DNA from: Leidyana gryllorum EB-2025a
Taxonomy: Eukaryota; Protista; Apicomplexa
NCBI GenBank assembly: GCA_048772705.1
Contig: JBLWGC010000230.1
Span: 1,054,001-1,118,000 of the forward strand
DNA: 64,000 nt
Reading direction: 5' to 3'
How positions within the stretch are numbered: position 1 is the stretch's first letter; the number at the start of each line of letters is the position of its first letter. Below are positions 3,710 to 20,481 of this stretch, piece by piece. Both the position numbers and the translations under genes were made by a program. The notes under the pieces are model-generated. The model worked only from the letters and a program-made list of their open reading frames with translations, was not told the origin of the DNA and made no database searches.

Positions 3710-6700
3710 ATGACCACAAACCAGAGACTTGCGAAAGTATTGGGTGTCCCCCAGACATACAGCTGGGGTACGCAAGGCTCTGCTTCTTTAGTAGCCGCCA
3801 CGCACCAAGCCTCCAACCCAACCTTCACACCTGATCCCCAGACCCCATATGCTGAGCTCTGGTTCGGAGCCCACCCATCCGCCCCCTCCCAAGTATTAGA
3901 TGGCGACACCACAACTAATCTGATAAATTGGCTCGGAGAGTCTAAATTACCTTACCTCTTCAAGGTCTTATCTATTGCTAAACCACTGAGTCTTCAACTA
4001 CATCCTGATGAGGAACAAGCTGCTAAACTTCATGCTGAGGATCCTGAACACTACAAGGACCCTCACAGCAAACCTGAGATGACTGTAGCCCTCTCTGACC
4101 CATTCGAGGCTTTCTGCGGATTTCGAAAGTATCGAGCGATCATGATGTTGGCGGAAAGTATTCCCGGATTCGCCAAAGTCATTCGACCCTCCAATGCTGA
4201 GTCGTTTGATCACCAAATGGACGAGACTGATTTTCTCAAGAGTATGATGAAGTGCCTGTATGAGGCTGCTGAAGACTCTATCAAGGCAGCCATTGATGAG
4301 GTATTGGCAATGGATGCTGAATCCGTACTGCCAGCCAAGAAAGATCACAAACTCTTTGGCCATGCATTCACCAAGTTTATGAACATATTGAAAGACGAAG
4401 ATCCCATTGAAACACTGCGCAGCACTCTGAGGTAATCAGACCAGCGCCTTCGATTTCACCTCCAGATATGCAGACTTTTCCGGCGCCTCCATGAATTCTT
4501 CCCCTATGATCGTGGCTGCTTCGCCGCCTTCTTCCTAACCTATGTCCGCTTGCGACCCGGCGAAGCAATTTTCTTGAGCCCGAACACTATTCATTCATAT
4601 ATTTCCGGAAACTGCCTGGAGGTCATGCAGACCAGTGACAACGTCATCAGGTGTGTCTCCGTGTGTCTCAGTGTTGCACACGAATTTGGATCGCAGAGCC
4701 GGTCTGACCGATAAATTCACAGATGTGTCTCGATTACTCGAATTGGTTTCCTACAAGGTATGTGATCTCATCTCGTGAACTGTTGCTGCACACTCAACGC
4801 TCACTCGCAGGCCATCAACCTGGCCTCGGCCATGGTGAAACCCGTAGATGTCTCCATGAAATTCGACGGAGGACATGCGGCGGTCTTGAAAGCTCTCGTA
4901 CCCCCCGCCACTGACGCCTTCAGGTTCTATCTCCTTCGACTCGGCACGGGAATGAGCGTCAAAGATCTAAAGATCCCCGCATGGTCGCCCATGATGCTTT
5001 TCGCCAGCCACGGAACTGGAGAGCTGAAACTGGGAGACTCGGACGACAACGTTGTCATCACGGCGGGACAATGCTGGATCAGCAATGACTGGACCCGTCT
5101 GTCCATCAAGAACACTGGCGAGAAGACTGAGGCCGAAGAATCTCGCGAAAAACGCCTGATCACACTCAATGCTGACACCCTCGGTGAAGATCAGGTGCGT
5201 AATGGCGCATTGGAGCTCGTCATTGTGATGCCTAACCTGGAGAGCGGCCGTCTCCGTCGCAGCAACAAGAGCCTCAAGAGTGGCACCTCATTGAGCGCCT
5301 CTCCAGCTCCTCCAGAAGTCGGTGGAGAGACGCCTGCAGTCAAAGACGCAGCCCCGACCAAGTTGTCCGTCGAGGCGTTCCCTCAAGTTGCTCCGCCCGA
5401 AGCAGACAACGAAGTGCCCGAGGCCGACTTGACAACAACCGATCCACCTGCCGCCGTCACCGCCGCTGCCGAGACTGACAAGTCTGAACCCGCTGCTGCT
5501 GCTGCCGCCGACACACAGGAGGAGGGAGAGAAAGAGAAGAAGAAGAAACACGGCAAACTCAGCTCCGCTCTTCGCAGTTTGGCCTCAGCTCGCCGCGAGA
5601 GGAAAGCGAGCAAGAACGCGGCACCGGCTGAGCAGTCCGGAGACACTGTGAACCCCACGGTGTCTGAAACCTCAGTGGCGTCTGCTGTTGCTGTTGCTGC
5701 TGCTGCGGAGACACCCGCCGCAAAGAGCGCAACTGTAACTGCCGCTGCTACTGTGGAGCCCACCAAGACGGAAAGTGCAGCTGAGGAGGTACCGGTTACC
5801 AGCCCTCCCGCTGTACCGCAACAAGAAGCCGAGCCAAAGACCATCGCGGCCGAAACAACAGCGGGTGCAGAAGCTGTGGAGGAGGAAAGTAAATCCGAAC
5901 AACCGCCAGTGAGTGTCACCCCGGCTGTGGTGGAGGCGATGAAGGAAGAAGCGCCAGTGGAGGAGACTGTCGCAGCAAAGGAAGCAGCCGCTGAGAAGCC
6001 TTCGACTGCCCCCCCAAAGGAAGCAGCCGCTGAGAAGCCTTCGACTGAAAGTACGCAAGGCAAAGAAGCAAAGATCACAACCGACTTGAAAGCCGACCCT
6101 AAAGCGGACTCGAAAGCCGTTACTGAGGAGCCAGCGAAAGAGGTAAAACCGGCGAGCGCTCCCGTGAATGAAGCAACCGCCAGTAAGCCTGCAGAGCCGT
6201 CAGCCACTCCTGCTGCGGAATCTGCCAAATCGCCGTCCAAAGGCGTTACAAAGACTAATGAAAGCCCCAAGCCAAGCGTGCGACCGTCTAACATAAAGAA
6301 GAGCAATGAAGGAACTGAGAAGTCGACTACTCCTTCTCCTGCGCCAACTTCGGTTCCAGTGAGCAAGGGTAGTGTGAGGGACAGGATCGCTCAGGCAAAT
6401 GCATCTGCTTCCTCGGCAGCGGGAAAAGAGGACCAGCCGAAGCCAGTTGGAAAAGTAGCCGCAGGCGCGGCGAGTGGACAGCGTGATGCGAAAAGTGGGG
6501 GAAAGCAACAACCTAAGGCTGATGAATCTGCAGAGCCGGAGACGTCGGCACGAGTAACGAAATCGCCCCCAAAGGCGAGCAAGACAATGACTCCCAAGTC
6601 TGTGAGCGCACGTCCTTCACCATTACTCAAACGAACAGCCTCGGGGGGCGTCAAGACTGATGTTTCCACTAGTGCGCCGACAGCCCCAGGAAGTCCCACC

Positions 6701-6724
6701 ACTGCGCCAGGACAAGCCGCTTGA
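3710..6724 (+). CDS. MPI: Mannose-6-phosphate isomerase (type I PMI) with a long low-complexity C-terminal extension
   Basis: Motifs YSWG, PYAELWFGAHP, LFKVLSIAKPLSLQLHP, KPEM and the spliced exon HSYISGNCLEVMQTSDNVIRAGLT. Introns ~4432-4465, 4651-4696 and 4759-4810 link the catalytic core into ORF 4775-6724. Confidence 0.88.
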
Positions 6725-6732
6725 GTCCAAAC

Positions 6733-8108
6733 TCATTTGTTGGCCCTTCTGGAGGAGGAAGAGGGGGGTTTCCGTCCAGTCTTTGACTCGTAATCGTCGA
6801 TGATGTCGTCCTCGATTTCACCGAGCAAGTGTTCGAGTTCTTCTTCAAAAGATAGGAATTCATCAGTACCTTTCCTATTGTTGTTTCCGCCTTTAAAGGG
6901 GGGAAGTTCCTCTAGGGGATCTGAATAGGAGGCTTGCGCGAAGGTATGCATAGCGTTAATAACACCGACAATGAGTTTAATGGGAATACCCTCCTCATCG
7001 GCTGCATAATAGAAGTGTCGAATTGCGGTAGAAACGGTTCTGGCAGCGAGGCCTCGAGCCTGGTCTTCATCTCGGGCGCTAAGACCGCTCCGCAATCGTT
7101 TGCGCAGAGCTGACAAAACTCTAAGCTCAGGCAGAGCCGCTTTTAGGCTAGTGATGAGCCGATCAATGAACTTGCGTTCAATGGCCGCGTCGCCATTCCT
7201 AAACTTAATGATTTGAAAGACCAGCATACCTGCGAAGGTACGATCGTGACTGTTCTGCACAAGGTACTCTATGATGTCATGGAAATCTACGAATTTCCCA
7301 TTCCTCAGAGCTGGAGAATTGTTGCTGTTGTTGTTGTTGTTCGGTTGGTTAGGGGAATCGCCATCGTCCGAGGAGGGCGATTGTTGCTTCTTCTTCTTGT
7401 TGGTGGGCGTGGTAGTGGTCGTTGTCGTTGTAGAAGCGGAGTCCCGTTTCTTTTTCTTATGTGCCTTAGAAGACGTTGTGCTGCTCGTTGTTGTGGTGGT
7501 GGTAGATCCATCTTTGTCCTTTTTCTTCTTCGACTTCTTAGTCGACGAGGCACCAGTTGAAGCGGTAGTCGTTGAAGTCGAACCCCCCTCGTTGCCTACA
7601 TAGGCGGTCAAGATTGTGTGTCTCGATATTTATGCGTGTGTGCGCTGTGTGTTCGATGGATTTAGTGTGACTAACCTTCCTTGTCTTGTTCGGAATGCTC
7701 TTCACTGACATCAGGAGCGGCCTTTTTGCCCTTCTTGGGGCCTTTCAGCTTGGCTCCTCCCTTGTGTGAGTCTTTGGACTTGCCGGGCATATCCTCGGAT
7801 TCAGGGGAGACTTCGACATCGTGTCCCTCTGCACCGGCTGTCAGTTCGCTATCCTCTGCTTCCGTAGTGGTTGATTCTTCTTCCTCGTCCAAGTCGCTGG
7901 TGGTGTGATTATCCTCCGAGTCTTCTTCATCGGCTTCTGAGTCATCCCCTACCTTTGTGGGATGATCAATAACCTGCTGCAGTAGACGGAGGGGTTGAGG
8001 TGGTGCTAAAGGGAGGAACGATGAGGCCGGGGCAGGTAGATAATTTGCCTGGCCGGATATGAGTGCAGCTGCGTATAAGGCGACAAAAAGGAAGGCTGCT
8101 ACATCCAT
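6733..8108 (-). CDS. Secreted acidic/Thr-Lys-rich protein with a C-terminal helical domain (cluster member F)
   Basis: Signal peptide MDVAAFLFVALYAAALISG. Intron 7596-7675 joins ORFs 7671-8132 and 6733-7611 in frame. Poly-Thr and poly-Lys tracts are present. Confidence 0.75.
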
Positions 8109-8197
8109 TGTGCCGTGGGAAATATGGGACACACGGGGATCTCACTTGTGAATGTTAGTTTTTGTTTGAGAGGTGAAATTCATCCTCATCGACAGGA

Positions 8198-10018
8198 ATG
8201 GTTGAGAGCAGCGGAAACGTAACTTCTAAGGTTGGAGGGCTTCCCGACCGGGTTTATCGCGTTCACCATGGCTTGGCCCTATTGCAAGACCCGTATTTGA
8301 ACAAGGGGACTGCGTTCACGATGAAAGAACGTGATGTCCTCCACCTGCACGGTTTCCTGCCACCTCATGTGGGAACACTGGAGGAGCAGGGGGCTCGTCG
8401 TATGGAGCGTTTGCGACGGATCGAGACCCCAATCCAAAAGTATGTGTTCCTACGGGAACTTCAAGAGCTCAATGAAACGTTATTCTACTACCTTTGCTGC
8501 AAGCACATGGAAGAGATTCTGCCGCTAATTTACACTCCGACGGTGGGGCAAGGGTGTCTGGAGTATTCTCACATTTTCTGGCGTCCCCGTGGTCTGTTTC
8601 TGGGTTGGCCCCATCGGGATCGGCTCGATGACATCCTGGCTCACCACTGTTTTGACGACATTCAAGTGATAGTGGTCACGGATGGAGAGCGGATTTTGGG
8701 GCTCGGCGACCAGGGAGCCGGAGGAATGGGTATACCGATAGGTAAATTGGCCCTGTACACCGGATGTGCGGGCATACATCCTCGCAAGACTTTGCCAATT
8801 TTGCTGGATGTCGGCACCGACAACCAGAAGGCACTGACTGACCCTTTGTACATTGGTTGGTGTCATCAAAGGCTGAGAGGGCAGGCGTACCACGAATTTG
8901 TTGACCTCTTTGTCAACGCGGTGAAGCGCCGCTGGGGTAATAAGTCTTTGTTGCAATGGGAAGATTTTGCCCGTGACAATGCTATCTACTTGTTGAATCG
9001 CTATAAAGACGAGATTTGTTCATTCAATGATGATATTCAAGGCACTGCTGCCGTTGTCGTTTCGACTATCCTCGCTGCCGTCCAAGCGATCAAACTCCCT
9101 CTCCGCGATGCTCGCATCGTCATTCGAGGTGCCGGCAGTGCAGCAACCGGCATTGTCGACCTCATTGGCCACTTACTCGTGGATGACCAGTTTGGGGACC
9201 AAAATCTTGACGCTGAGGAAGAAGAGAAACGCGCTATCGTTCTCGGAAGGTCGGCCTGCTGGATGGTCAACAGAAATGGCCTCCTGCTGGCTGATGACCC
9301 CAGTCTTGAAAAATTACACAAGAACTATGCCCACCCCAACGCTGAGATTGAGGGATGGAAGTGCAAAGATCTCCAGCATCCAACGCTTCTAGAAGTTATC
9401 GAAAATGTCAAACCACACATTCTGATCGGCGTCACCGGCCGCGCTGGAGTCTTTGATGAATCCGTCGTCCGTTGTATGGCGGAACATGTGGACCGCCCTA
9501 TCATCATGCCCCTTTCAAACCCCACCTCCTGCTGTGAGGCGGAACCCCAAAACATTATCAACTGGACGGAGGGAAAGGCTCTGGTTGCCACCGGGAGCCC
9601 TTTCGCCCCCGTCACTCTACCGGACGGAACCACCCGTGTGGTTGACCAGACCAACAACGTTTATGTGTTCCCAGGCCTTGGCCTGGGTGTTCTGTCGGTC
9701 TGTGCTCAACGGGTCACTCACCATCTGTTCGTTGCTGCGGCCAAGACTGTCGCCTCCGAGTCCCCCATCGCAAAAGATCCGTCGGCTTTCAAGTTGCTGC
9801 CGCCCATCGATACCCTGAGATCTGTGTCTCGCAAAGTGGCTATCGCTGTCGGCAATAAAGCTGTCGAAAAGGGCTTGTGCGAGAAACTCACTCCCGCCCA
9901 AGTCACACGGATGGTAGAAGATAACATTTGGGAGCCTGCCTACCACGATTACCTCAGTGAGTTCCCGGACCTGTCGCCCTCACCCTTCACCATGATCGAT
10001 GGACCGTATGACCAATGA
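8198..10018 (+). CDS. Malic enzyme (malate dehydrogenase, decarboxylating), SfcA/MaeA-type, intronless
   Basis: Motifs NKGTAFT, IYTPTVG, VTDGERILGLGDQG, GIPIGKL, QWEDFA, FNDDIQGT, GAGSA, PLSNPT, ATGSPF and NNVYVFPG. Confidence 0.96.
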   Translation: MVESSGNVTSKVGGLPDRVYRVHHGLALLQDPYLNKGTAFTMKERDVLHLHGFLPPHVGTLEEQGARRMERLRRIETPIQKYVFLRELQELNETLFYYLCCKHMEEILPLIYTPTVGQGCLEYSHIFWRPRGLFLGWPHRDRLDDILAHHCFDDIQVIVVTDGERILGLGDQGAGGMGIPIGKLALYTGCAGIHPRKTLPILLDVGTDNQKALTDPLYIGWCHQRLRGQAYHEFVDLFVNAVKRRWGNKSLLQWEDFARDNAIYLLNRYKDEICSFNDDIQGTAAVVVSTILAAVQAIKLPLRDARIVIRGAGSAATGIVDLIGHLLVDDQFGDQNLDAEEEEKRAIVLGRSACWMVNRNGLLLADDPSLEKLHKNYAHPNAEIEGWKCKDLQHPTLLEVIENVKPHILIGVTGRAGVFDESVVRCMAEHVDRPIIMPLSNPTSCCEAEPQNIINWTEGKALVATGSPFAPVTLPDGTTRVVDQTNNVYVFPGLGLGVLSVCAQRVTHHLFVAAAKTVASESPIAKDPSAFKLLPPIDTLRSVSRKVAIAVGNKAVEKGLCEKLTPAQVTRMVEDNIWEPAYHDYLSEFPDLSPSPFTMIDGPYDQ

Positions 10019-10522
10019 AATCATTACTAATTCCACTATCGCTCGGAAAGGACATTGCGCAAGTGTCAACTGCCAAACCAATGATCTGAAATTGTTAGCG
10101 GTCACTGACTCAGTGTGTGTATGTGTGCGCGCATTGATCAACCGCAGTTTAATACCAATACTTCCAATTGACACTGACCTCCCAGTGTGTGCGGGCGCAG
10201 CTCGGTCAGCACAGTCTGTCTGTGCACCAGTTGTGGGCATTCATCTCGGCAGCGCAAAGTGCATACAACTCTGTGTGGTTGTGTGTGTACTTGATATATT
10301 GTCGATGTGTGTGTTGTGCTGTTCGGTGGCGATATGTATGACGGTCCTTTTGGGGCGATCACGCTGCGTGTATGCACTTGTATTGCACTACTGGGGCTTG
10401 ATGTCTCTCCTGCGTTATGTGTCCGTCTCCTCCGATGTTCTCAAACTGGCGGCTGTCCGGATCTATTTCGATATTCCTTCGGCAGGCGACAATCACTATT
10501 TTATCAAGTCGCACAAGCAGCA

Positions 10523-11737
10523 TTATGAACAGGGCGGTTTCGTTGAACAGCACCGTTCACCTCTTGGGCGAACGGCGTCAAACGTATCTTCACGCTCGAG
10601 TTCACTGTCGTCTGTTCGGGATGAACCGTCTCTCTTAGCACCATCTGCCCCGCTGGAGGCCGATTCATCTGCAGGTGTGGTGGCTTGATTCCGGTGGCAT
10701 CCTGGAACCAGCTCGAATTCATTGCAGTAACGAGTTCTGAGGATGGTGGCGATACGCCTGGAGATCTGACGAATTTGATGTTTTTGTTCTTCCGATCCCT
10801 CGCTGTAGAACGGGTACAGTACTTTTTCCGTGGCCATCTGCATATCCATGAAGATCTCTTGGCTAATGGAGCTGAAGGAGCCATACGAATAGAACAAAAC
10901 ATGATAGCTCATAACCACAGCGTTGTGATAGTACACTTCCAGCCCCACCAGAGCATCCGCCAGGGTGGCGATATGATCTGCCTTCCAATTGTCCAGAGCT
11001 GATCCAATCTGACTGACGGCGGCCGCGATCTCCCCACGCACCCCTTGGAATGTGAGATAGTCATACAGCAAACTTTGCTTTTTGGACTTGAAGCTGTATG
11101 TGCGTCTAGTTCTCACATGCCGTTCTGACTTGCGCCACCGTCTGAATTCTGTCTCGTTGAACGACCGACTGGCGGAAGTTGCCCGTGCTGATGGCTGCTG
11201 ATCCTTGTTCGCACCGTTGTTGTTGTCTCCACCGCCGACATTCTCTTTCTTCTTTGGTGGATATCTCCTCCGCGGTACGGACTCGGACTCCGCCTCCATA
11301 CCGACAGTGGTCGGTTTGGGCGTAGTGGTGGTGGTGGTCGGAGTCGTCGTTGTTGTGGGCGTGGTGGTTGTGGTTGTTGTTGTCGTCGTCGTTGTTTTGG
11401 TGGTTGTGGTTGTTGTGGTGGTTGTGGTGGTGGTCGGCTTTGGAGTACCGCGAGAAGAACTTCGTTGTGAAACCTTCCGCGGGTCATTGGCATCGTCTGC
11501 TTCAGAGTCACCGATGTGGAATGAGGCTTCAAGACCGTAGTCACCACCGAGAAGGCTTCCAACGCCACGACCGACATTTCCAGCAGCGTGGCCAAGATCT
11601 TTGGTGGCGTTTTTCAGATCACCGTGGGCAACGTGATGGGCCAAATCATTGATATTGGAGCCAGCGTTGCCTAAGCGATCGAATAGACCAGCTTGGGTAT
11701 GGTGAAGGCACAGGAGGGACAGAAGCAGCAGTAACAT
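10523..11737 (-). CDS. Secreted mucin-like protein with a poly-Thr stalk and helical domain (cluster member E)
   Basis: Signal peptide MLLLLLSLLCLHHTQA, a ~40-residue Thr tract, then a globular segment YDYLTFQGVRGEIAAAVSQI... Confidence 0.8.
   Translation of the reverse strand: MLLLLLSLLCLHHTQAGLFDRLGNAGSNINDLAHHVAHGDLKNATKDLGHAAGNVGRGVGSLLGGDYGLEASFHIGDSEADDANDPRKVSQRSSSRGTPKPTTTTTTTTTTTTKTTTTTTTTTTTTPTTTTTPTTTTTTPKPTTVGMEAESESVPRRRYPPKKKENVGGGDNNNGANKDQQPSARATSASRSFNETEFRRWRKSERHVRTRRTYSFKSKKQSLLYDYLTFQGVRGEIAAAVSQIGSALDNWKADHIATLADALVGLEVYYHNAVVMSYHVLFYSYGSFSSISQEIFMDMQMATEKVLYPFYSEGSEEQKHQIRQISRRIATILRTRYCNEFELVPGCHRNQATTPADESASSGADGAKRDGSSRTDDSELEREDTFDAVRPRGERCCSTKPPCS
11320..11432 (-). 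repeat. ACN trinucleotide tract encoding poly-Thr (O-glycosylation stalk)
   Basis: (GGT/TGT/CGT)n on the + strand, which translates to TTTT... on the - strand. Confidence 0.85.
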
Positions 11738-11780
11738 TATTGGTTTTTCTACGGGCGTTTGTGGTCAGCCGATCGATCTC

Positions 11781-12482
11781 TCACAATAAGAAGAGCGCTG
11801 GCAAAAGGAGTAACGCAGAAACGGAGATGACAGATTTGGTGGCATTGCTGGGTGAGTATCTCCGAAGGTTGTTGGAGGGCATTAGTGGGTTTGTACCGCC
11901 GCCGGGGTAGGTGGGTCGGTTGTTGTAAGGGTTGCCGATATAACTTCCTCCTCCGTTGTAGGGAAGATAGCCGTGATTTACATTTCCCCCCAAGGGCGAT
12001 GCGAGGACGCGACGACAGGAGTCATAAGTGGCAAAGGGAAGGCAGAGGCCTCGAAGGAGGTGATCGAGGATTTCCTCTCCGAGTCGACAGTTCTTGGTAT
12101 GCAAGTGAGGATGGTGGTGATGATGAGGGGGGCCGACCGAGTTGAAAGCCTCTCGCACCTTGTTGTCGAGTTCAGTTTGGGATCGTTGCAGCGAGGACTC
12201 GAATTCCGTTGGACTCAAACGCGTTCTCTCGCGCTGCAAGGCGTCTTGATAGGCGAGCATAGTTTGACCGGATATGAACAAGGCCTCATGTATCTGGGCC
12301 ATCTCTCGAGTTGACAACTCTGTTATTCCCGCACCATGCATCACTTCCGCAGCCCTAAAGGCTACGTCCTGTGGCACCCCATGGTCGGCCCAGAAACGTT
12401 GACTTTCTTGCACCGTGGTCAGTTCATCGCTCGCAACCAAGTAAAACAAACTTGAGATCAGAAGTAGAAGTAGGCGTGTCAT
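11781..12482 (-). CDS. Predicted GPI-anchored surface protein (cluster member D)
   Basis: Signal peptide MTRLLLLLISSLFYLVAS. The C-terminus SPSNATKSVISVSALLLLPALFLL has small omega-site residues, a spacer and a terminal hydrophobic tail. Confidence 0.78.
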   Translation of the reverse strand: MTRLLLLLISSLFYLVASDELTTVQESQRFWADHGVPQDVAFRAAEVMHGAGITELSTREMAQIHEALFISGQTMLAYQDALQRERTRLSPTEFESSLQRSQTELDNKVREAFNSVGPPHHHHHPHLHTKNCRLGEEILDHLLRGLCLPFATYDSCRRVLASPLGGNVNHGYLPYNGGGSYIGNPYNNRPTYPGGGTNPLMPSNNLRRYSPSNATKSVISVSALLLLPALFLL

Positions 12483-15400
12483 TTTTTTCCTGTAATGCTC
12501 GGGACTTCAACCCGGCCGCTCCCTCGGAGCAGCCGACGATCAGTAGCCGCTGACAAACCATCGCCAAATGGACGCAAACCGCTGATCAAAGACGCTAAAT
12601 AGGGCCGCAGGCTCGTGAAGTCATCATCAAGAGCTTCATAACCCTCCTCCAATTCTGTAATGGAACCAGACACCACAGGACGCACGATATCACACAACAC
12701 TCCGCCAAATACTGGCCAACTGCACACGCCTGGACCAGTGCGGTGTAGCGCTTGAGCAGCTGTAAAGAACAAACGATTTGCTCCTTTGAGGGTCCCATCC
12801 ACAACAACGATCAAATGACTCAACTCGCGGGCCGGAATCTCTGTCACTCCGCCGTATACCAATGCACCAGCCATGACGCCCGCAGCTCCATCGCCGAACC
12901 GAGAAGCGAACACACGATTCACAGCAATGTAATCACGAATTGCATCGTGCCCGACTACCATCGCGCCGCCTGGCAAGAGTTCTGGTAGCCTCGCACGTTT
13001 GTCCCATCCCCAATTATGATCTCCGATGAGTAAATCAATCCGGGAGTCATCACCAACAGCCGCTGACGACTCTGAAGAACTAAAATCACCGTCACTGTCA
13101 CCATCAGCGTCAGCATCACTGCTAATATCAGTAACACTGGGACCCCTGAATTTGCTCTCAGTCTCCACTCCGTCCCCCCTTTTGAAATCCTCGTCACTGT
13201 CCTCGGGGTCAGGAGTGTCGACACCCACATAGGGGTCCACCGGAATCCCATTCTCCTCGTCATCTCCATCCAGAGGGAGATCCGTCGGGACTGTGATGAA
13301 CGCATCATCACTGCTGTCACTGTCACCATCATCAGCCTCCGCCTCCTCCTCATCCGCCGTTGACAACTCATTGCTCGAACGCGACTTGAATGGTTGATTG
13401 AAAATCTGTTCACTCGTCGTCACAGACGCAGTACTTGCAGTCTCAGTCGGAACAACGTACGGAGGCACAGCCGTTGAGAGCCGCACAACCGATGGGAAAG
13501 TCGTCAAACGAGTCACAACCTCAGCAGCTGTCGACTGGAAGAACTCTTCTGTCGAGACAGCCTCCGTCGTTGTAGTCTCGTCAACCTGCAAAGGAGAGAG
13601 AAGAATTCGCTGAAACCCAACTTTCCTCGTCACCACTTACTGCTGGCATCGGCGCCTCGACTACGTCACCAAAGCTGTCACTGTGTTGCTCACTATCCAC
13701 ATCATCGTCCTGAGGGTCGAAGTACAACGGAGGTCGGTAGCCTGGGGGCAATAGCAAAGTACTTACACTGGGGCTCGAAGTTGACCATAACTCTGCTGCC
13801 TCGGTTTTGTCGGCGACGCCATTATCTTCGACAGCCACAGAGTCTCCAATGTTTTCTTTAGCGATCGGGGCGGTCACTCGTGTCATATCTTCAAAGGCTT
13901 CGCTCACGTCTTCCTCAGTACTGCTGCTCGTTTCCTCATCTCCATCTGTCACACCATCGCTCGTCGAGGAGGTCGATGTCTCCGTCTCGGTCGCAGTCGA
14001 AGACGACTCTGTGGTTTCTCCTTCTTCTGCAACAGTATCTGTCGACTGCTCATCATCAGAGACGGCAGCTTCCTCGGGCTCGCCACTGATACTGGGATCA
14101 GTACTGGTGACAAACGGACTTGGAGACGCCAAAGTGGTGGTCACCTCCTCGGTGGTCTCGACGGGCATTGGTGGTGGTGGAGCCAAACTGGTGGTCACCT
14201 CCTCGGTGGTCTCGACGGGCATTGGTGGTGGTGGAGCCAAACTGGTGGTCACCTCCTCGGTGGTCTCGACGGGCATTGGTGGTGGTGGAGCCAAACTGGT
14301 GGTCACCTCCTCGGTGGTCTCGACGGGCATTGGTGGTGGTGGAGCCAAACTGGTGGTCACCTCCTCGGTGGTACTTATCTCGAGAAGAGACGGCGGAGGC
14401 GTCAACGTAGTTGTAATGTCCTCAGTCACTTCGAGGGCTGGTGTGTCTTCGCTTATGTCAGCAGACATCGGAGGCGGAGCCATTGTGGTGGTCACATCAT
14501 CCGGCACATCGGCGGTGGTGAACGGCGGCACCTCGGTGGTGTCTTCGCTTATGTCAGCAGACATCGGAGGCGGAGCCATTGTGGTGGTCACATCATCCGG
14601 CACATCGGCGGTGGTGAATGGGGACTCGGCGTCAGTTTTCTCCGACGACGACTCTTCCACCTCGGTTACGGCTGCCGTGGTCGGGATGAAAGTCTCTTCA
14701 GTCTTGGGCATCATAGTGGGGATGAAGGTCGGATTTGTCTCTTCGGCTTCGGGTGCGACGCCGACAGAGTCCGTACTTTCGAATGGAGCCGGAACATAGG
14801 TTACCGTCGAGGAGGTCTCCGTTGTGGTTGACGTCTCTAACAAAGTCGTGGAATCAGTTACCTCCTCATCAGCAATAATCTTTGACGGTTCAGTCTCCGG
14901 TAAGGTCGGCTCTGTTTCCGCGGCTTCGGGCTCAGCACTCACTGCACGAGTGACTTCATCCAGCGGGGCTGGCTCGGCCTCTGTGGCGTCAGTGGATGGT
15001 GCAGCAGCAGTTCGGACGTCGCTGGAGGCGCTGGTCTCTTCGGCTTCTGTGGTGCTTTCCTCTGTGGTGGCGGCAGTGGTCTCTGCTGCGGTGCTGGTCA
15101 CCTCAGACTCGGAAGTAGACGACTCCTCAGTGCTCAACGGAACCTTCGCAGTGTCGGTGTCATCTGCCGCTTCTGTTGCGAAGGCTGGAGGAGCTTCCTG
15201 CAGATTCTGTGGAGCTGTCACCGTCGGCTCGGCCCACGTGCTGGTGCCCGGAACACCAACGGATGTTTGCGCGTCCGGTTCCGTCGCATCAGTTGCGATT
15301 TTGAGGACGGGAGTGCTGGTCGATGTTTCAGTCTCCGTCGAAGTTGTCACATCTGCAGGGGCAGTGGGTGCTGCAGTCCAAGTTGTCGACACCGAGAACT

Positions 15401-18383
15401 CGATCTCCGCTTCCGTCGTGGTGAAAGTTGCCTCTTCCGTAGTGGTGGGAGTTGTGTCCACGACGACAGTGGAGACTGGCGCGTCCGTAGTGGACACAGA
15501 CTCGACCTCTTGGGGAACTGAGGGAGTCGGAACTTCCTCGGTGGCAGCAGTGGGGGCACTCTGCACCTCTCCAGGGACTGAGACGGTGACCGGGGGGTCC
15601 GGAGTCGTAGTGGGGGCAGCTTCCAGATCCTGGGGTACTGAAACTGTGACCGGTTCGGTGGTAGGAATGGGAGCCTCTTGCAGTGACTGCGGCACAGAGA
15701 CTGTAACAGGTTCTGTGGTTGTCGGAACCACCGCTTCGAGATCCTGAGGCACTGACACAGTGACTTCTTCGGTCGAGGTGATCGGAAGAGTCTGAACCTC
15801 TCCAGGCACTGATACAGTGACGGGTTCTGGAGTCGGAGTGGGAGCAGCTTCCAGATCCTGGGGTATCGAGACGGTGACTGGGCTCGTGGTAGTCTCGGGC
15901 GCCTGCTGGAGATCTTGAGGCACTGCCACAGTAACTGCGTCGGTAGCAGTCGCCGGTAGAGTTTGGACCTCCCCAGGTACTGATACAGTGATGGGTTCTG
16001 GAGTCGGAGTGGGAGCAGCTTCCAGATCCTGGGGTATCGAGACTGTAACAGGTTCTGTGGTTGTCGGAACCACCGCTTCGAGATCCTGAGGCACTGCCAC
16101 AGTAACTGCGTCGGTAGCAGTCGCCGGTAGAGTTTGGACCTCCCCAGGTACTGATACAGTGACGGGTTCTGGAGTGGTCGTGACCACAGCCTCCACCTCT
16201 GGGACGGAGGTGGCGGGAGTGGTAACGGCCTCAGAGCTCAATTCACTCTCAGTGACCTCTTCCTCGGTCTGGACGCTCGCCGACACTGTAACGTCTACCA
16301 CCTCAGTGGTCACCACAACCTCGAAAGCGGTGGTAGAATCGTCCTCTGGACGCGTCGTGGGAGTTTCCACTACCTCTGGGGTGGATGTCGCTTCGGTAGT
16401 CTCTTCCTCAGATTGAACTGTTGCGGAAAGGGTTACCTCCACTGCCTCTGTGGACACCACAGCCGTAAAGGTTGTGGATGACGTTTGCTCCGGTGCTGTG
16501 GTGGGGGAAGCCGTGGACTCGATCGAGGGCGAGAGTTCCTTCTCCGGAGCCACAGTGAACGGAGCCTGGGTGGAGACAGCTTCTGGCGCTGCGTCGATCG
16601 TCCTGGCGGTCTCCTCGGTGGCGGGAGCGGAAGTGGAGGTTTCCTCCTCCTCCGTGGTGGACTCCTCCGTAGTGGAATCGGAAGCAGTATGAGTACCATC
16701 GAGAGTAGTAGTGGTGAAAGTAGCAGGTTCACTGGTGGTACTCGCTTCCTCTGTTGTGGAATCTGCTTCTGGCGTGGAATTTAGAGGAGACTCTAGCAGG
16801 GAAGGCCCGGTAGTGACAGTGACTTCTAACTGAGGAGTTGTAGACTCCTCGGCTTGGAGGTCTGCCTCAGGGGTGGTCTCTGAAAGCGGTTCCGTACTCG
16901 ATTGAACTGTTTCCGTATCCACTCCATCAGTCGACCCCTCTTCGACGGCTTCGGTTTCGGTCTCAGTCGATCTCGGGATCTCTGTTGTTTCCAGCGACTT
17001 GGGTTCAGATTCTTCCACCGGTGCCTCCGTAGCGGCAGCTTCAGGCTCTGCCTGTACGGGGAGAAATTCGGTCACTTCCGTATCAGTGGGAATGGGGAAC
17101 GCAGTCATAGTTAGGGGCGGGACAGTACTTTCGGAGGTCGTGGGTGGTTCGGTTGGCTCAGTACTGGACGTTGTTGCCTCCGTGCTGGTGGAGGACTCGT
17201 CGTCGTCGTCGTCGTCAGGCTCTGTGGTGGTGGTAAGGGGGCTTGTGAGCTCTGGTTCGGCACTTGGTGAGGATTGAGGCATCTGAGTGGATGCCGAGTC
17301 TGTCGTCGTAAGAGTTGCACTAGTCGTTAATGGAGCGTTAGTGGTGGTTGCGGGTCTTCTATAGGGTCTGGTGGTCTCATCGGATTCTTCTTCTTGTGGG
17401 GTGGTTTCTTCCGTTGAGGAAGTAGCGTTAGTAGGTAAGGGTGGCGGGATGGTGGAAGAGGAGGGCTCGTCTTCCTCCGAGGAGGCCTCTGTTTCGGACT
17501 TCTCGGGCTCATAGCGAATAGTAATGTGTTGATCCTCATCAGGTTCACAGGTAGGATCCCCGGCCTCCTCGTCATCGCCTTCATCTTCGCACTCAGGTAA
17601 GGTGGTGGTGTTGTCTTCGATAGTTTTGTCGGTAGATGGGGAGAGGGCAGGTGCACTGGCGACAGCTTCAGGTGCGATCACAGCCGCAGTGGTCTCATCG
17701 TCTGGTTGGGCAGTTGTTTCTGCATCCTCAGTGGTGGTGACATCGTCTGTGTCGTTTCCATCGACTTCCTCCTCTGTTGTAGTGTGAGGCCTATGGCGGC
17801 CGATGATCTTGACGGTGAGGAGTTCATATTCGGTCGATTCTATGAGCTCTTCTTCATCATCACTGATAGAATCGACGTCCTTTCCATAGGGCGACTCGAC
17901 ACCTGGTGCTAGTGGGCGTCTCTTGTCACCTGACCGAAGAGGGTGTTTCGCCTTTCTCTTCTCCTCCTCAGGGGTTATGGGATCGACCCAATTGTCCTTG
18001 GGAAGATCTTCGACATCAGGTTCGTTGATGATCCATGGTTTCTCGGCATCCGGATCGAGGGGCTCCGTACTAGTGGAGTCCAGAATCACGGGCACCATGT
18101 CATCATCGTCGTCATCGTCATCGTCAATAAGATCATCATCCTCATCGTCATCATCAATGTACTGATCCCGATTAAAAGACTCGGGACGCACCGCGCCGCC
18201 TCCCGTAGTAGTGTCCTCGTCTACATCATCATCCTCGCTGCCGTCCGCTACAGACGAGGGCCCTTTGTCCTGTTGTAATAAGTTATCTTCAGGGAAGTAA
18301 TACAGCCGCCTGGGAGCAGGTGCTGATGTCGTTTCAGTCGTAAGTACTAACAAGCAAATTGGAACCAGTAAACTGTACTTCAT
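12479..18383 (-). CDS. Giant (~1950 aa) secreted Thr/Glu/Pro-rich mucin with a C-terminal helical domain (cluster member A)
   Basis: Signal peptide MKYSLLVPICLLVLTT. Intron 13586-13640 (gtaagt...ttgcag) joins ORFs 13581-18383 and 12479-13636 in frame. Several internal tandem repeats. Confidence 0.85.
14134..14371 (-). repeat. 54-nt near-perfect tandem repeat, ~4 copies (VETTEEVTTSLAPPPPMP)
   Basis: acgggcattggtggtggtggagccaaactggtggtcacctcctcggtggtctcg recurs at 54-nt intervals (14161, 14215, 14269, 14323). Confidence 0.95.
14443..14620 (-). repeat. 96-nt tandem duplication (PFTTADVPDDVTTTMAPPPMSADISEDT x2)
   Basis: gtgtcttcgcttatgtcagcagacatcggaggcggagccattgtggtggtcacatcatccggcacatcggcggtggtg occurs at 14443 and 14539. 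Confidence 0.9.
15500..16200 (-). repeat. Degenerate 57-nt (19-aa) repeat array with a 171-nt higher-order period
   Basis: Units PVTVSVPGEVQTLPATATD / AVTVAVPQDL... / PVTVSIPQDLEAAPTPTPE. Identical DNA blocks lie 171 nt apart (15917 and 16088). Confidence 0.88.
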
Positions 18384-18832
18384 CGCCGAGGACGATCTAA
18401 CATACGGTCACCTTTTCGGTTTCGATGGCTCTAGAGATCTCCTTGATGATCCGGGTCGTAAGTCCCAACACCACTTGTTAGTCTGAAAACACCTTTTGGG
18501 CCATTCAGACACCGAATTTAGCTTTGATCGGTCTCAACAGTACAATCGCGCGCCAGCAAGTTGTCACAACCCCTTTTACCCCCTTTGACGGGCTTTACAG
18601 TCGCCGCGAACCCTCTCAGCGCCTCCAGTTATCCACTTCTCTCGTCGCTGACACATGTCCCTTCTGCCCGGTGGCCATTCTTCGTGTGCCGCTTACGTTT
18701 TCAAGGGGGGGCGGTTCTTTCTCTTGTAAGATTACAGACTCATTGTTATGCGTAATGGGTGCGAGTGCTTTTGTAAAGCCGCGGGGTGGCCGCAAGCACC
18801 ACCTCGAGCATTGGCAGTTTTCACCCTATCTC

Positions 18833-19543
18833 TCAATCGTTGAAATGTAGATTTCTGTGGAGGAGAGCGATATCGTCGAGCACAATGTCAATGAGTCGGC
18901 GAACGGCAGAGCGAACGAAGGAGACACGAGGATCGAATGACAATCGAGAGTGCAGTCGCATCAACTCAGAAAAGATGATACTGATAGTCTCGCGGTAGTT
19001 ATCGTCCTGGTCGGGATCGTCGAGCAGTTCATCAATTGGCTTGAAGCAAACAGGAAGCCCCACTTCCACTCCCAATCGCAACGGAACGATCACGTTGAAG
19101 AGGGGAAGGATCTCATTCTCGGTGTTACCCTCAATCAAATCCAAAAAGTGGTTCACAGACTCCGGGTGGATCGGCACGTGATGTCGGCTGCTAAAAAGCG
19201 AAGCAAAATAGGCGATACCGTACGTTCCCAACCGATCCCCATAAGTGGGATGTGTGGTCAGATATAGCATAAAGTCCACATAGGTCCGCAGAATGACTTT
19301 GCCGTTGACGACAGTTCCGATCTTCTGATTGACGAGAAGCGTTCCATCTTCTCTGCGAGAGGGAGGAAAAGGGTGAGAGGCAAGCCGTCCGGGTACCACT
19401 TACTGAGGCTTGAGGTGCTGGGTGGCATTGAAGTCCGGGACCGTCGTGAGAGGTCGACGGTCGGGGAGCGACTGGAGAGCGCGGAACGCGGTTCGAGCAT
19501 ATGCGAGAGCCCCGCCCAAATACAGCAAGATCAAAGGCTTCAT
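18833..19543 (-). CDS. Small secreted protein consisting mainly of the cluster helical domain (member C)
   Basis: Exon 1 (not in the ORF track) reads MKPLILLYLGGALAYA..., a signal peptide. Intron 19353-19403 (gtaagt...cgcag) joins it in frame to ORF 18833-19399. Confidence 0.72.
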
Positions 19544-19676
19544 TTACGTGGGAAGAACAGAAGAAAAGGATCAATTCGACGGTTAGTCTGTCCGGTAAGT
19601 GGCGGAAAAGGCAGGTGCGAATCGTTCTGAACGTTTGTAGATCGCAAGGTAATCAGTCCAGTAATGCTTCTTAAGA

Positions 19677-20481
19677 TCAATTGTCGTCGTCATCATCACT
19701 GCTGCTGGAATCATCATCATCATCATCGGCGCCGCCAGATTGTTTGTGACGTTTCAAGTGATGGAAGGGGTGTAACACGTGGTTCAGCAAGTCATCCAAT
19801 CCGTTATGAAGAGCTTTGAGTAAGACGCCCAAGTTATGGCCTTCGGCTGCCAAGGTAGTTCCCAACATATCGAGAATGCGGATAGCACCTACAGATTTGC
19901 TTCATACTGCAACGGCCGCCAAGAGTAACCCACCATTGAACAGAGGTGACAATAATTCTACCACCGGCCGAATAATCTTGATAGCCTCCAACATGTGGAA
20001 GGTCTCACGCAGGACACGAGCGAGACCAAATATAAGCGGTGCGAGGCCTAAGCTGTCGTTCAATTTCATGATCAACTCATCAACCATATTGGTGGCCACA
20101 TTCGTCACGCCTCCAACAGTCAATCCCTGCGCAATTTCCCGGGAAGCCAGTTTCCCGTAACCCTTATGATTCTGCTTAATGTGCTTTTCAATAGCTTTGG
20201 CGTCAGAAAGAGTGCTGGGAGAAGAATCCTCTGCGAAAAGCACACACACAATCACGGAGACGGCAGCTTGACTCACTGGAAGAAGGAGGAGCTTTGGAAG
20301 AAGGAGGAGCTCCAGCACCCTTCAAGTGGGGAGGGGCTTCCATGGCTGCCACATCCTGATGGTCAGTCAGCCGCTTGAAAGTGTCAGTCCACTCGGCCAG
20401 ACACACTTCAGAAGTGCCAGCCTGACGGCCCCCGACCACCAATCCCACACACAATGCGAGCGAGCCGATGATGAGCCTCAT
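19677..20481 (-). CDS. Small secreted protein with the cluster helical domain and a poly-Asp tail (member B)
   Basis: Signal peptide MRLIIGSLALCVGLVVG. Intron 20231-20276 and a 45-nt gtgggt...ctgtag intron (~19889-19933) join three ORF pieces. Confidence 0.72.

Follow-up and report, generated by a model that had tools for sequence, protein, structure and literature searches.

Six co-oriented genes for secreted proteins

The window analysed here comprises 64,000 nucleotides (nt) of contig JBLWGC010000230.1 from the gregarine Leidyana gryllorum EB-2025a (GCA_048772705.1; forward-strand positions 1,054,001 to 1,118,000). Six genes, designated A to F, span 6733–20481 on its minus strand and represent a clustered, lineage-restricted secreted family of mucin type with an undescribed domain. 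After removal of short GT-AG introns (45–80 nt), each gene runs from ATG to stop with no internal stop codon, and each protein has an N-terminal hydrophobic leader (recognised by eye and from hydropathy) that is kept in orthologues. A preliminary description of this stretch had reported a cluster of six minus-strand genes with signal peptides and a common segment; the genes, their leaders and the quoted segments are all present, but B, C, A, D and E follow one another in that order and are separated from F by a malic enzyme gene on the opposite strand, a 5+1 arrangement. The features, with lengths in amino acids (aa), are as follows.

20481–19677, minus strand: gene B, 237 aa, exons 20481–20277, 20230–19934 and 19888–19677 (2 introns); signal peptide, short linker, core domain at aa ~70–213 (split by intron 2), acidic tail.
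19543–18833, minus strand: gene C, 219 aa, exons 19543–19404 and 19352–18833 (1 intron); signal peptide, R-x-L-Q motif, core domain only.
18383–12479, minus strand: gene A, 1949 aa, exons 18383–13641 and 13585–12479 (1 intron); signal peptide, ~1750-aa acidic Thr/Ser/Pro/Glu stalk, C-terminal core domain, no membrane anchor.
13021–12482, minus strand: core domain of A, hub of the homology network.
12479–12482, minus strand: ATGA, 4-nt overlap of the A stop and D start, following an A7 run (12479–12490, in-frame A_AAA_AAA).
12482–11781, minus strand: gene D, 233 aa, intronless open frame; signal peptide, D/E-type helical domain, Gly/Tyr/Asn/Pro linker, glycosylphosphatidylinositol (GPI)-type C-terminal tail.
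11737–10523, minus strand: gene E, 404 aa, intronless open frame; signal peptide, poly-Thr stalk, RTRR furin-type site at aa 209, D/E-type domain (11095–10691), Cys-containing tail.
8198–10018, plus strand: malic enzyme, intronless, bacterial-type, with Pfam malic and Malic_M matches; not a family member.
8108–6733, minus strand: gene F, 431 aa, exons 8108–7676 and 7595–6733 (1 intron); signal peptide, acidic then Thr/Ser/Lys-rich stalk, core domain (7317–6907), acidic helix.

The 80-nt intron of F is removed in RNA of a 90–95% identical relative (three runs). The remaining introns rest on splice signals and frame, with conservation in relatives L011, L012 and L016 as additional evidence for those of B and C; the intron of A (13640–13586) lies outside the relative's RNA coverage. 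A, E and F combine a signal peptide with a long Thr/Ser/Pro-rich region and are thus mucin-like by composition and putatively glycosylated, the Thr run of E giving a weak match to Pfam Mucin. The stalk of A (Thr 20–25%, acidic) includes near-perfect 54-nt (4.5 copies) and 96-nt tandem repeats together with an older 171-nt array (14128–16175). Among the six proteins only D has a second hydrophobic stretch, the predicted GPI-type tail; both this tail and a stalk of about 1700 aa in A had been anticipated in the preliminary description.

In the near relative, RNA contigs were found for F, E, D and the last exon of A. One runs unspliced from the last exon of A through all of D, ending at 11770, and no indel is listed at the A–D overlap. 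Such contigs cannot separate a two-gene transcript from overlapping transcripts, both of which occur in Cryptosporidium parvum (PMC11761812), and the overlap is treated here as tight packing. Fusion of A to D by splicing was rejected, as no splice joint is present in these contigs, and fusion by −1 frameshifting on A_AAA_AAA was judged unlikely, as D has its own leader and the A-run fits an A-rich start context.

The core domain and its relatives

Sequence comparison and predicted structures together indicate that A, B, C, F and an unlinked paralogue, G, share a domain of ~150 aa, three times the length of the segment originally quoted. G, also secreted, was found by genome search on contig C143 (about 85910–86530, plus strand; L004 1411–2031) and matches C (E 5e-4; z 6–13). 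It was the only additional member recovered from the 15.5-Mb, 237-contig assembly in loose first-look searches, so that the member count is a lower bound. The members span 206–1949 aa, are 11–25% identical to one another and are poor in Cys (0–3 per domain, 0–6 per protein; none in F, one in C).

The preliminary description had singled out A–B, A–D and A–C as the clearest matches. In plain local alignment against shuffled sequences the first two do exceed expectation (z 7.8 for A–B; z 4.0 over 25 aa for A–D), but A–C is marginal (z 2.1) and all other pairs fail. The A–B link holds across alignment tests (z 6–8). In global alignment A–C reaches z 3.1–3.4 and A–G, independently, z 3.0–3.7, with 0 of 112 real-protein decoys scoring as high. 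MAFFT profiles built with no hand input recovered F from A+B (z 3.8) and A from C+G (z 4.0), in each case above all 106 decoys; they failed to recover C from A+B+F, F from C+G or B from F+C+G, which makes A the bridge of the family. F, earlier regarded as the weakest member, is thus well supported, and that place falls to E, which no profile of the other members recovers. A three-block test in the register of the preliminary description placed held-out A, B, C, G, D and F correctly (z 5.5 for F, 2.6 for D) and misplaced E; as the register was taken from that description, the test is partly circular, and the MAFFT-profile and secondary-structure results weigh more. Unsupervised optimisation of three blocks gave z 5.3 against shuffles vs z 1.0 against decoy protein sets (a control of two sets).

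The strongest case for uniting A/B/F with C/G in one family comes from the agreement between structure models. AlphaFold2 models of C (from C, two orthologues and G; mean predicted local distance difference test score, pLDDT, 61.6; predicted template modelling score, pTM, 0.51) and of F (from F, its orthologue, A and B; pLDDT 73.7, pTM 0.67) are independent, with no input rows in common, and both predict a β-hairpin, helices 1 and 2, a short strand and helices 3–6. In an alignment made from sequence only, the predicted secondary structures agree at 89% of 99 positions, and the five strand residues common to both all fall at the same places; agreement is highest without any shift and drops to ~50–60% once the sequences are shifted by 8 or more positions.

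D and E are paralogues of each other, because they align end to end (22% identity, global z 3.0) and because C-x2-F-x5-C-x-R, which closes both domains, occurs exactly twice in 179,222 translated positions. Whether this pair belongs with the core family stands at about even odds. The local A–D match (25 aa, z 4–4.5) and a predicted helix spacing that by eye resembles that of the core point towards membership, but against the core profile the pair scores only z 1–2. The proposal of an old tandem family with a mostly helical domain on different scaffolds is therefore retained for A, B, C, F and G, but the domain cannot be assigned to all six clustered genes, D and E forming a pair of their own.

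A separate resemblance was seen between the junction of helices 5 and 6 in F (G-I-P-x10-M-H; 6970–6920) and that of helices 1 and 2 in D (G-V-P-x10-M-H; 12400–12335; HHalign E 0.04), possibly reflecting internal duplication of the domain or a common turn motif.

Distribution and conservation

The domain, which the preliminary description did not recognise, matches no described family or solved fold, although a blank obtained with models of modest confidence does not prove a new fold. Database searches were run on single exons, with the joined B domain (exons 2 and 3) and the joined A, C and F proteins used in local comparisons only; they gave no Pfam match in two scans, wall families included, and no sequence match in PDB. 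Feature-based comparison with the ESM Atlas returned only weak HEAT/ARM-type leads for C, at low recognition, and none for A. Foldseek searches of PDB and BFVD with the C and F models gave no credible match (E > 0.3), and a wide VIA search found only generic bundles (best Z 7.5 and 9.3 for the two models), while Atlas comparison by shape reached best template modelling scores of 0.51 and 0.26. The VIA matches of F to the designed oligomers 5k7v and 6u1s and the PfEMP1 mimic 6sny (Z 8.2–9.3, helices 3–6), all bundles of three to four helices, were rejected as homologues, with 8–12% identity and with the hairpin and first helices uncovered; for helical bundles, such scores do not reach the range in which VIA is considered reliable.

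A search of 1.84 billion representatives used a seven-way profile that in local trials had picked up orthologues at 70% identity and was weak for B and D. It retrieved five gregarine-type orthologues (of C, F, G and B) and a plant repeat protein (P0008, E 6e-5) that was rejected as spurious; none was named from Gregarina niphandrodes, Cryptosporidium or other apicomplexans, although distant kin may lie beyond its reach. Homologue searches for D and A/B gave nothing past B of a near relative, no domain orthologue of A, D or E was obtained, and two metagenome scans for the family were blank. So far the family, whose cluster appears to be the remnant of an old tandem expansion, has been seen only in cockroach-type gregarines.

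Orthologues of C are 98% (P0001), 71% (P0002), 72% (P0003, Blabericola migrator) and 58% (P0007) identical, and dN/dS, the ratio of nonsynonymous to synonymous substitution rates, is 0.019 for C compared with L011. The domain of the B orthologue in L011 has 95–96% aa identity, with synonymous sites saturated, and in the F orthologue of Gregarina sp. Poly1 the domain is 77% identical vs 22% for the stalk. The orthologue of G (P0006, 49%) lies in L015, where a neighbouring gene on the opposite strand resembles one near G. Judged from these sequences, each paralogue is old and constrained, unlike members of a variant antigen family. B. migrator and Gregarina sp. Poly1 are cockroach gregarines sequenced from trophozoites (PMC8051059), and the C and F orthologues derive from trophozoite transcriptomes.

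The order B–C is kept in L011, and in L012, from another gregarine, C is followed by a gene that resembles A in position and make-up (BLASTP non-significant; local z 3.8, driven by acidic runs). A run of TTTAGGG telomere-like repeats lies between these two genes (L012 1413–1480). In the window, 41 nt of the C–A spacer (18463–18503) are 88% identical to L011, vs ~76% in the neighbouring coding block, and constitute a candidate regulatory element upstream of A.

An enzyme of Rhizobium shares 54% identity with the malic enzyme, consistent with gene transfer from proteobacteria, which has been reported in cockroach gregarines (PMC8051059). Together with the named homologues of C and F, this points to a cockroach-type gregarine as the source of the window. 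The start codon of the malic enzyme lies 89 nt from that of F, head to head, and it is barely covered in the relative's RNA contigs. On its other side F converges on a plus-strand gene (4775–6724) with a long Ala/Glu/Pro/Lys-rich tail, the two stops being 8 nt apart.

Possible roles at the parasite surface

The position of the domain suggests a function. The O-glycosylation-type stalks of A, E and F each have it at their C-terminal end, where surface mucins usually bear a membrane anchor, and no anchor is present; in D a similar helical domain would sit directly above the GPI tail. We therefore propose, tentatively and at somewhat less than an even chance, that the core domain mediates docking of the anchorless mucins onto D, itself predicted to be GPI-anchored. 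On this view the complex would be held at the trophozoite or gamont membrane through D; A (and E and F) would bind D and extend their glycosylated stalks away from the cell, forming a brush-like coat or being shed as adhesive mucus, and B, C and G, which have no stalk, would be structural partners. Purifying selection on the domain of C, B and F fits a structural interface rather than antigenic variation. Seven loci of the genome match both GT2 and GT7C, the pattern of polypeptide N-acetylgalactosaminyltransferases, and PIG-A and PIG-M of the GPI pathway are present. A fuller version, in which all six proteins and G would be subunits of one hetero-oligomeric coat on a new fold, nucleated by D and extended by mucin A, is unlikely.

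Such an arrangement would have parallels in Cryptosporidium. In C. parvum, the paralogous glycoproteins AGP1 and AGP2 form a surface heterodimer (PMC9973360); they are genus-restricted secreted paralogues of ~22% identity from adjacent gene pairs, Ser/Thr-rich and one of them bearing a mucin-like domain, features comparable with those of the proteins described here. The AGPs differ in being ~65 kDa, disulfide-linked and located on invasive zoites, whereas the gregarine proteins range over 206–1949 aa and have a nearly Cys-free core domain; the profile search of 1.84 billion representatives gave no AGP1 or AGP2 match, an indirect result as the AGP sequences were not aligned directly. In gp60 (gp40/gp15; PMC9713705), an unanchored O-glycosylated mucin lies upstream of a small GPI-anchored unit, the same order as A then D. 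However, cleavage of a single precursor yields gp40 and gp15, whereas A and D are separate open reading frames with separate signal peptides and a 4-nt overlap. Moreover, gp60 is highly variable, whereas those gregarine members that could be measured are strongly conserved. GP900 and the CpMuc mucins, the latter encoded in tandem loci, are likewise very long or clustered Thr-rich secreted glycoproteins, but A lacks a transmembrane tail, its C-terminus being formed by the new helical domain, and the likeness of the stalks is compositional only. By analogy, the proposed system would work like AGP1–AGP2 or gp40/gp15 with an unrelated domain, and would belong to neither.

Several observations weigh against docking on D or against the breadth of the family that it presupposes. 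D is the only anchor candidate among the members, and Pfam searches of the genome gave no candidates for the GPI transamidase subunits PIG-K, PIG-T and PIG-U, probably for reasons of search sensitivity. D scores z 2.1–2.6 against the core, in the right register, and E z 0.7–1.3; 19 of 106 decoys reach z 2.1 and 31 of 106 reach z 1.3 with the core profile. HHalign comparison, the check suggested at the outset, was non-significant between subfamilies, with very shallow alignments, and local leave-one-out searches with hidden Markov models (HMMs) mostly failed, although this diluted test also missed the true C–G pair. The C and F models are of modest confidence and were compared by secondary structure only. 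In addition, G lies on another contig amid unrelated genes, and in the relative E is found on separate RNA contigs of low depth, contig depth being a poor measure of expression.

Less probable than docking, yet to be taken seriously, is a reading in which the paralogues form one family but act separately, the domain binding an outside ligand (host gut glycans, microvilli or peritrophic matrix) or self-associating, with reach or stage differing per gene and no hetero-complex. The low identity between paralogues, the location of G outside the cluster, the expression of E apart from A and D and the independent conservation of every orthologue group are all consistent with this. The ligand-binding heads of mucin-stalked adhesins, however, are normally distal to the anchor, whereas the gregarine domain is C-terminal, and the anchorless A, E and F would need a partner to stay on the cell.

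Rather improbable is a role after feeding, in which gamont-stockpiled proteins would be released at syzygy to form the gametocyst envelope (or oocyst wall), the domain polymerising and the stalks providing a hydrated layer. Secretion, strong conservation, clustering and graded stalks would suit such a wall, and large trophozoites may already be gamonts. In C, R-x-L-Q follows the signal peptide (aa 21–24; 19483–19472) as in granule cargo processed by aspartyl proteases, is kept in four C sequences (window, L011, L012 and L016) and is a possible aspartyl-protease maturation site; the genome has at least five aspartyl protease loci. Oocyst wall proteins (COWP/OWP) are likewise secreted structural proteins of apicomplexans, but COWPs are built of Cys-rich repeats, which the gregarine members do not have. 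Of the roles suggested in the preliminary description (surface coat, mucus or wall), a coat fits the anatomy and expression in trophozoites, whereas an oocyst wall is less likely because the domains are Cys-poor, no wall family is matched in Pfam, and the orthologues come from trophozoite transcriptomes; the transcripts are from feeding-stage samples and one member is GPI-tailed.

It is very unlikely that only pairs are related (A–B, C–G and D–E) and that the remaining likeness is convergent amphipathic-helix patterning among unrelated secreted orphan genes. The non-significant HHalign and local HMM results between subfamilies and the z of 1.0 against decoy protein sets would be expected in that case, but F vs A/B and A vs C/G exceed all 106 real-protein decoys with no hand alignment, and the boundaries of the hairpin, short strand and helices coincide in independent models; a purely pairwise relationship stays live mainly for D/E. 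Least likely of all is a role as effectors that enter the host cell at the epimerite, R-x-L marking them for export, as the motif is found in A (RRL, aa 25), C (R-x-L-Q, conserved) and F (R-x-L-Q) but is missing from B, D, E and the orthologue of F, and a 1750-aa mucin stalk, a GPI tail and strong conservation across hosts are extracellular features or otherwise at odds with such a role.

In Porospora, equivalents of gp40/15, GP900 and mucins were not found, gregarines appear to be without canonical adhesins, and mucus and epicytic folds are named as missing from any gregarine gliding model (PMC9250747). If all six proteins and G did form one coat, they would represent the first molecular constituents of the glycocalyx, or of the gliding mucus trail, of eugregarines. 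Cryptosporidium already offers systems of this kind and the lineage concerned is narrow, so that the value of the family lies in a new domain and a testable lead rather than in a new principle: conserved, expressed in trophozoites, and combining an undescribed domain with mucin stalks and a GPI-tailed neighbour, its members are concrete candidates for study of the gregarine surface.

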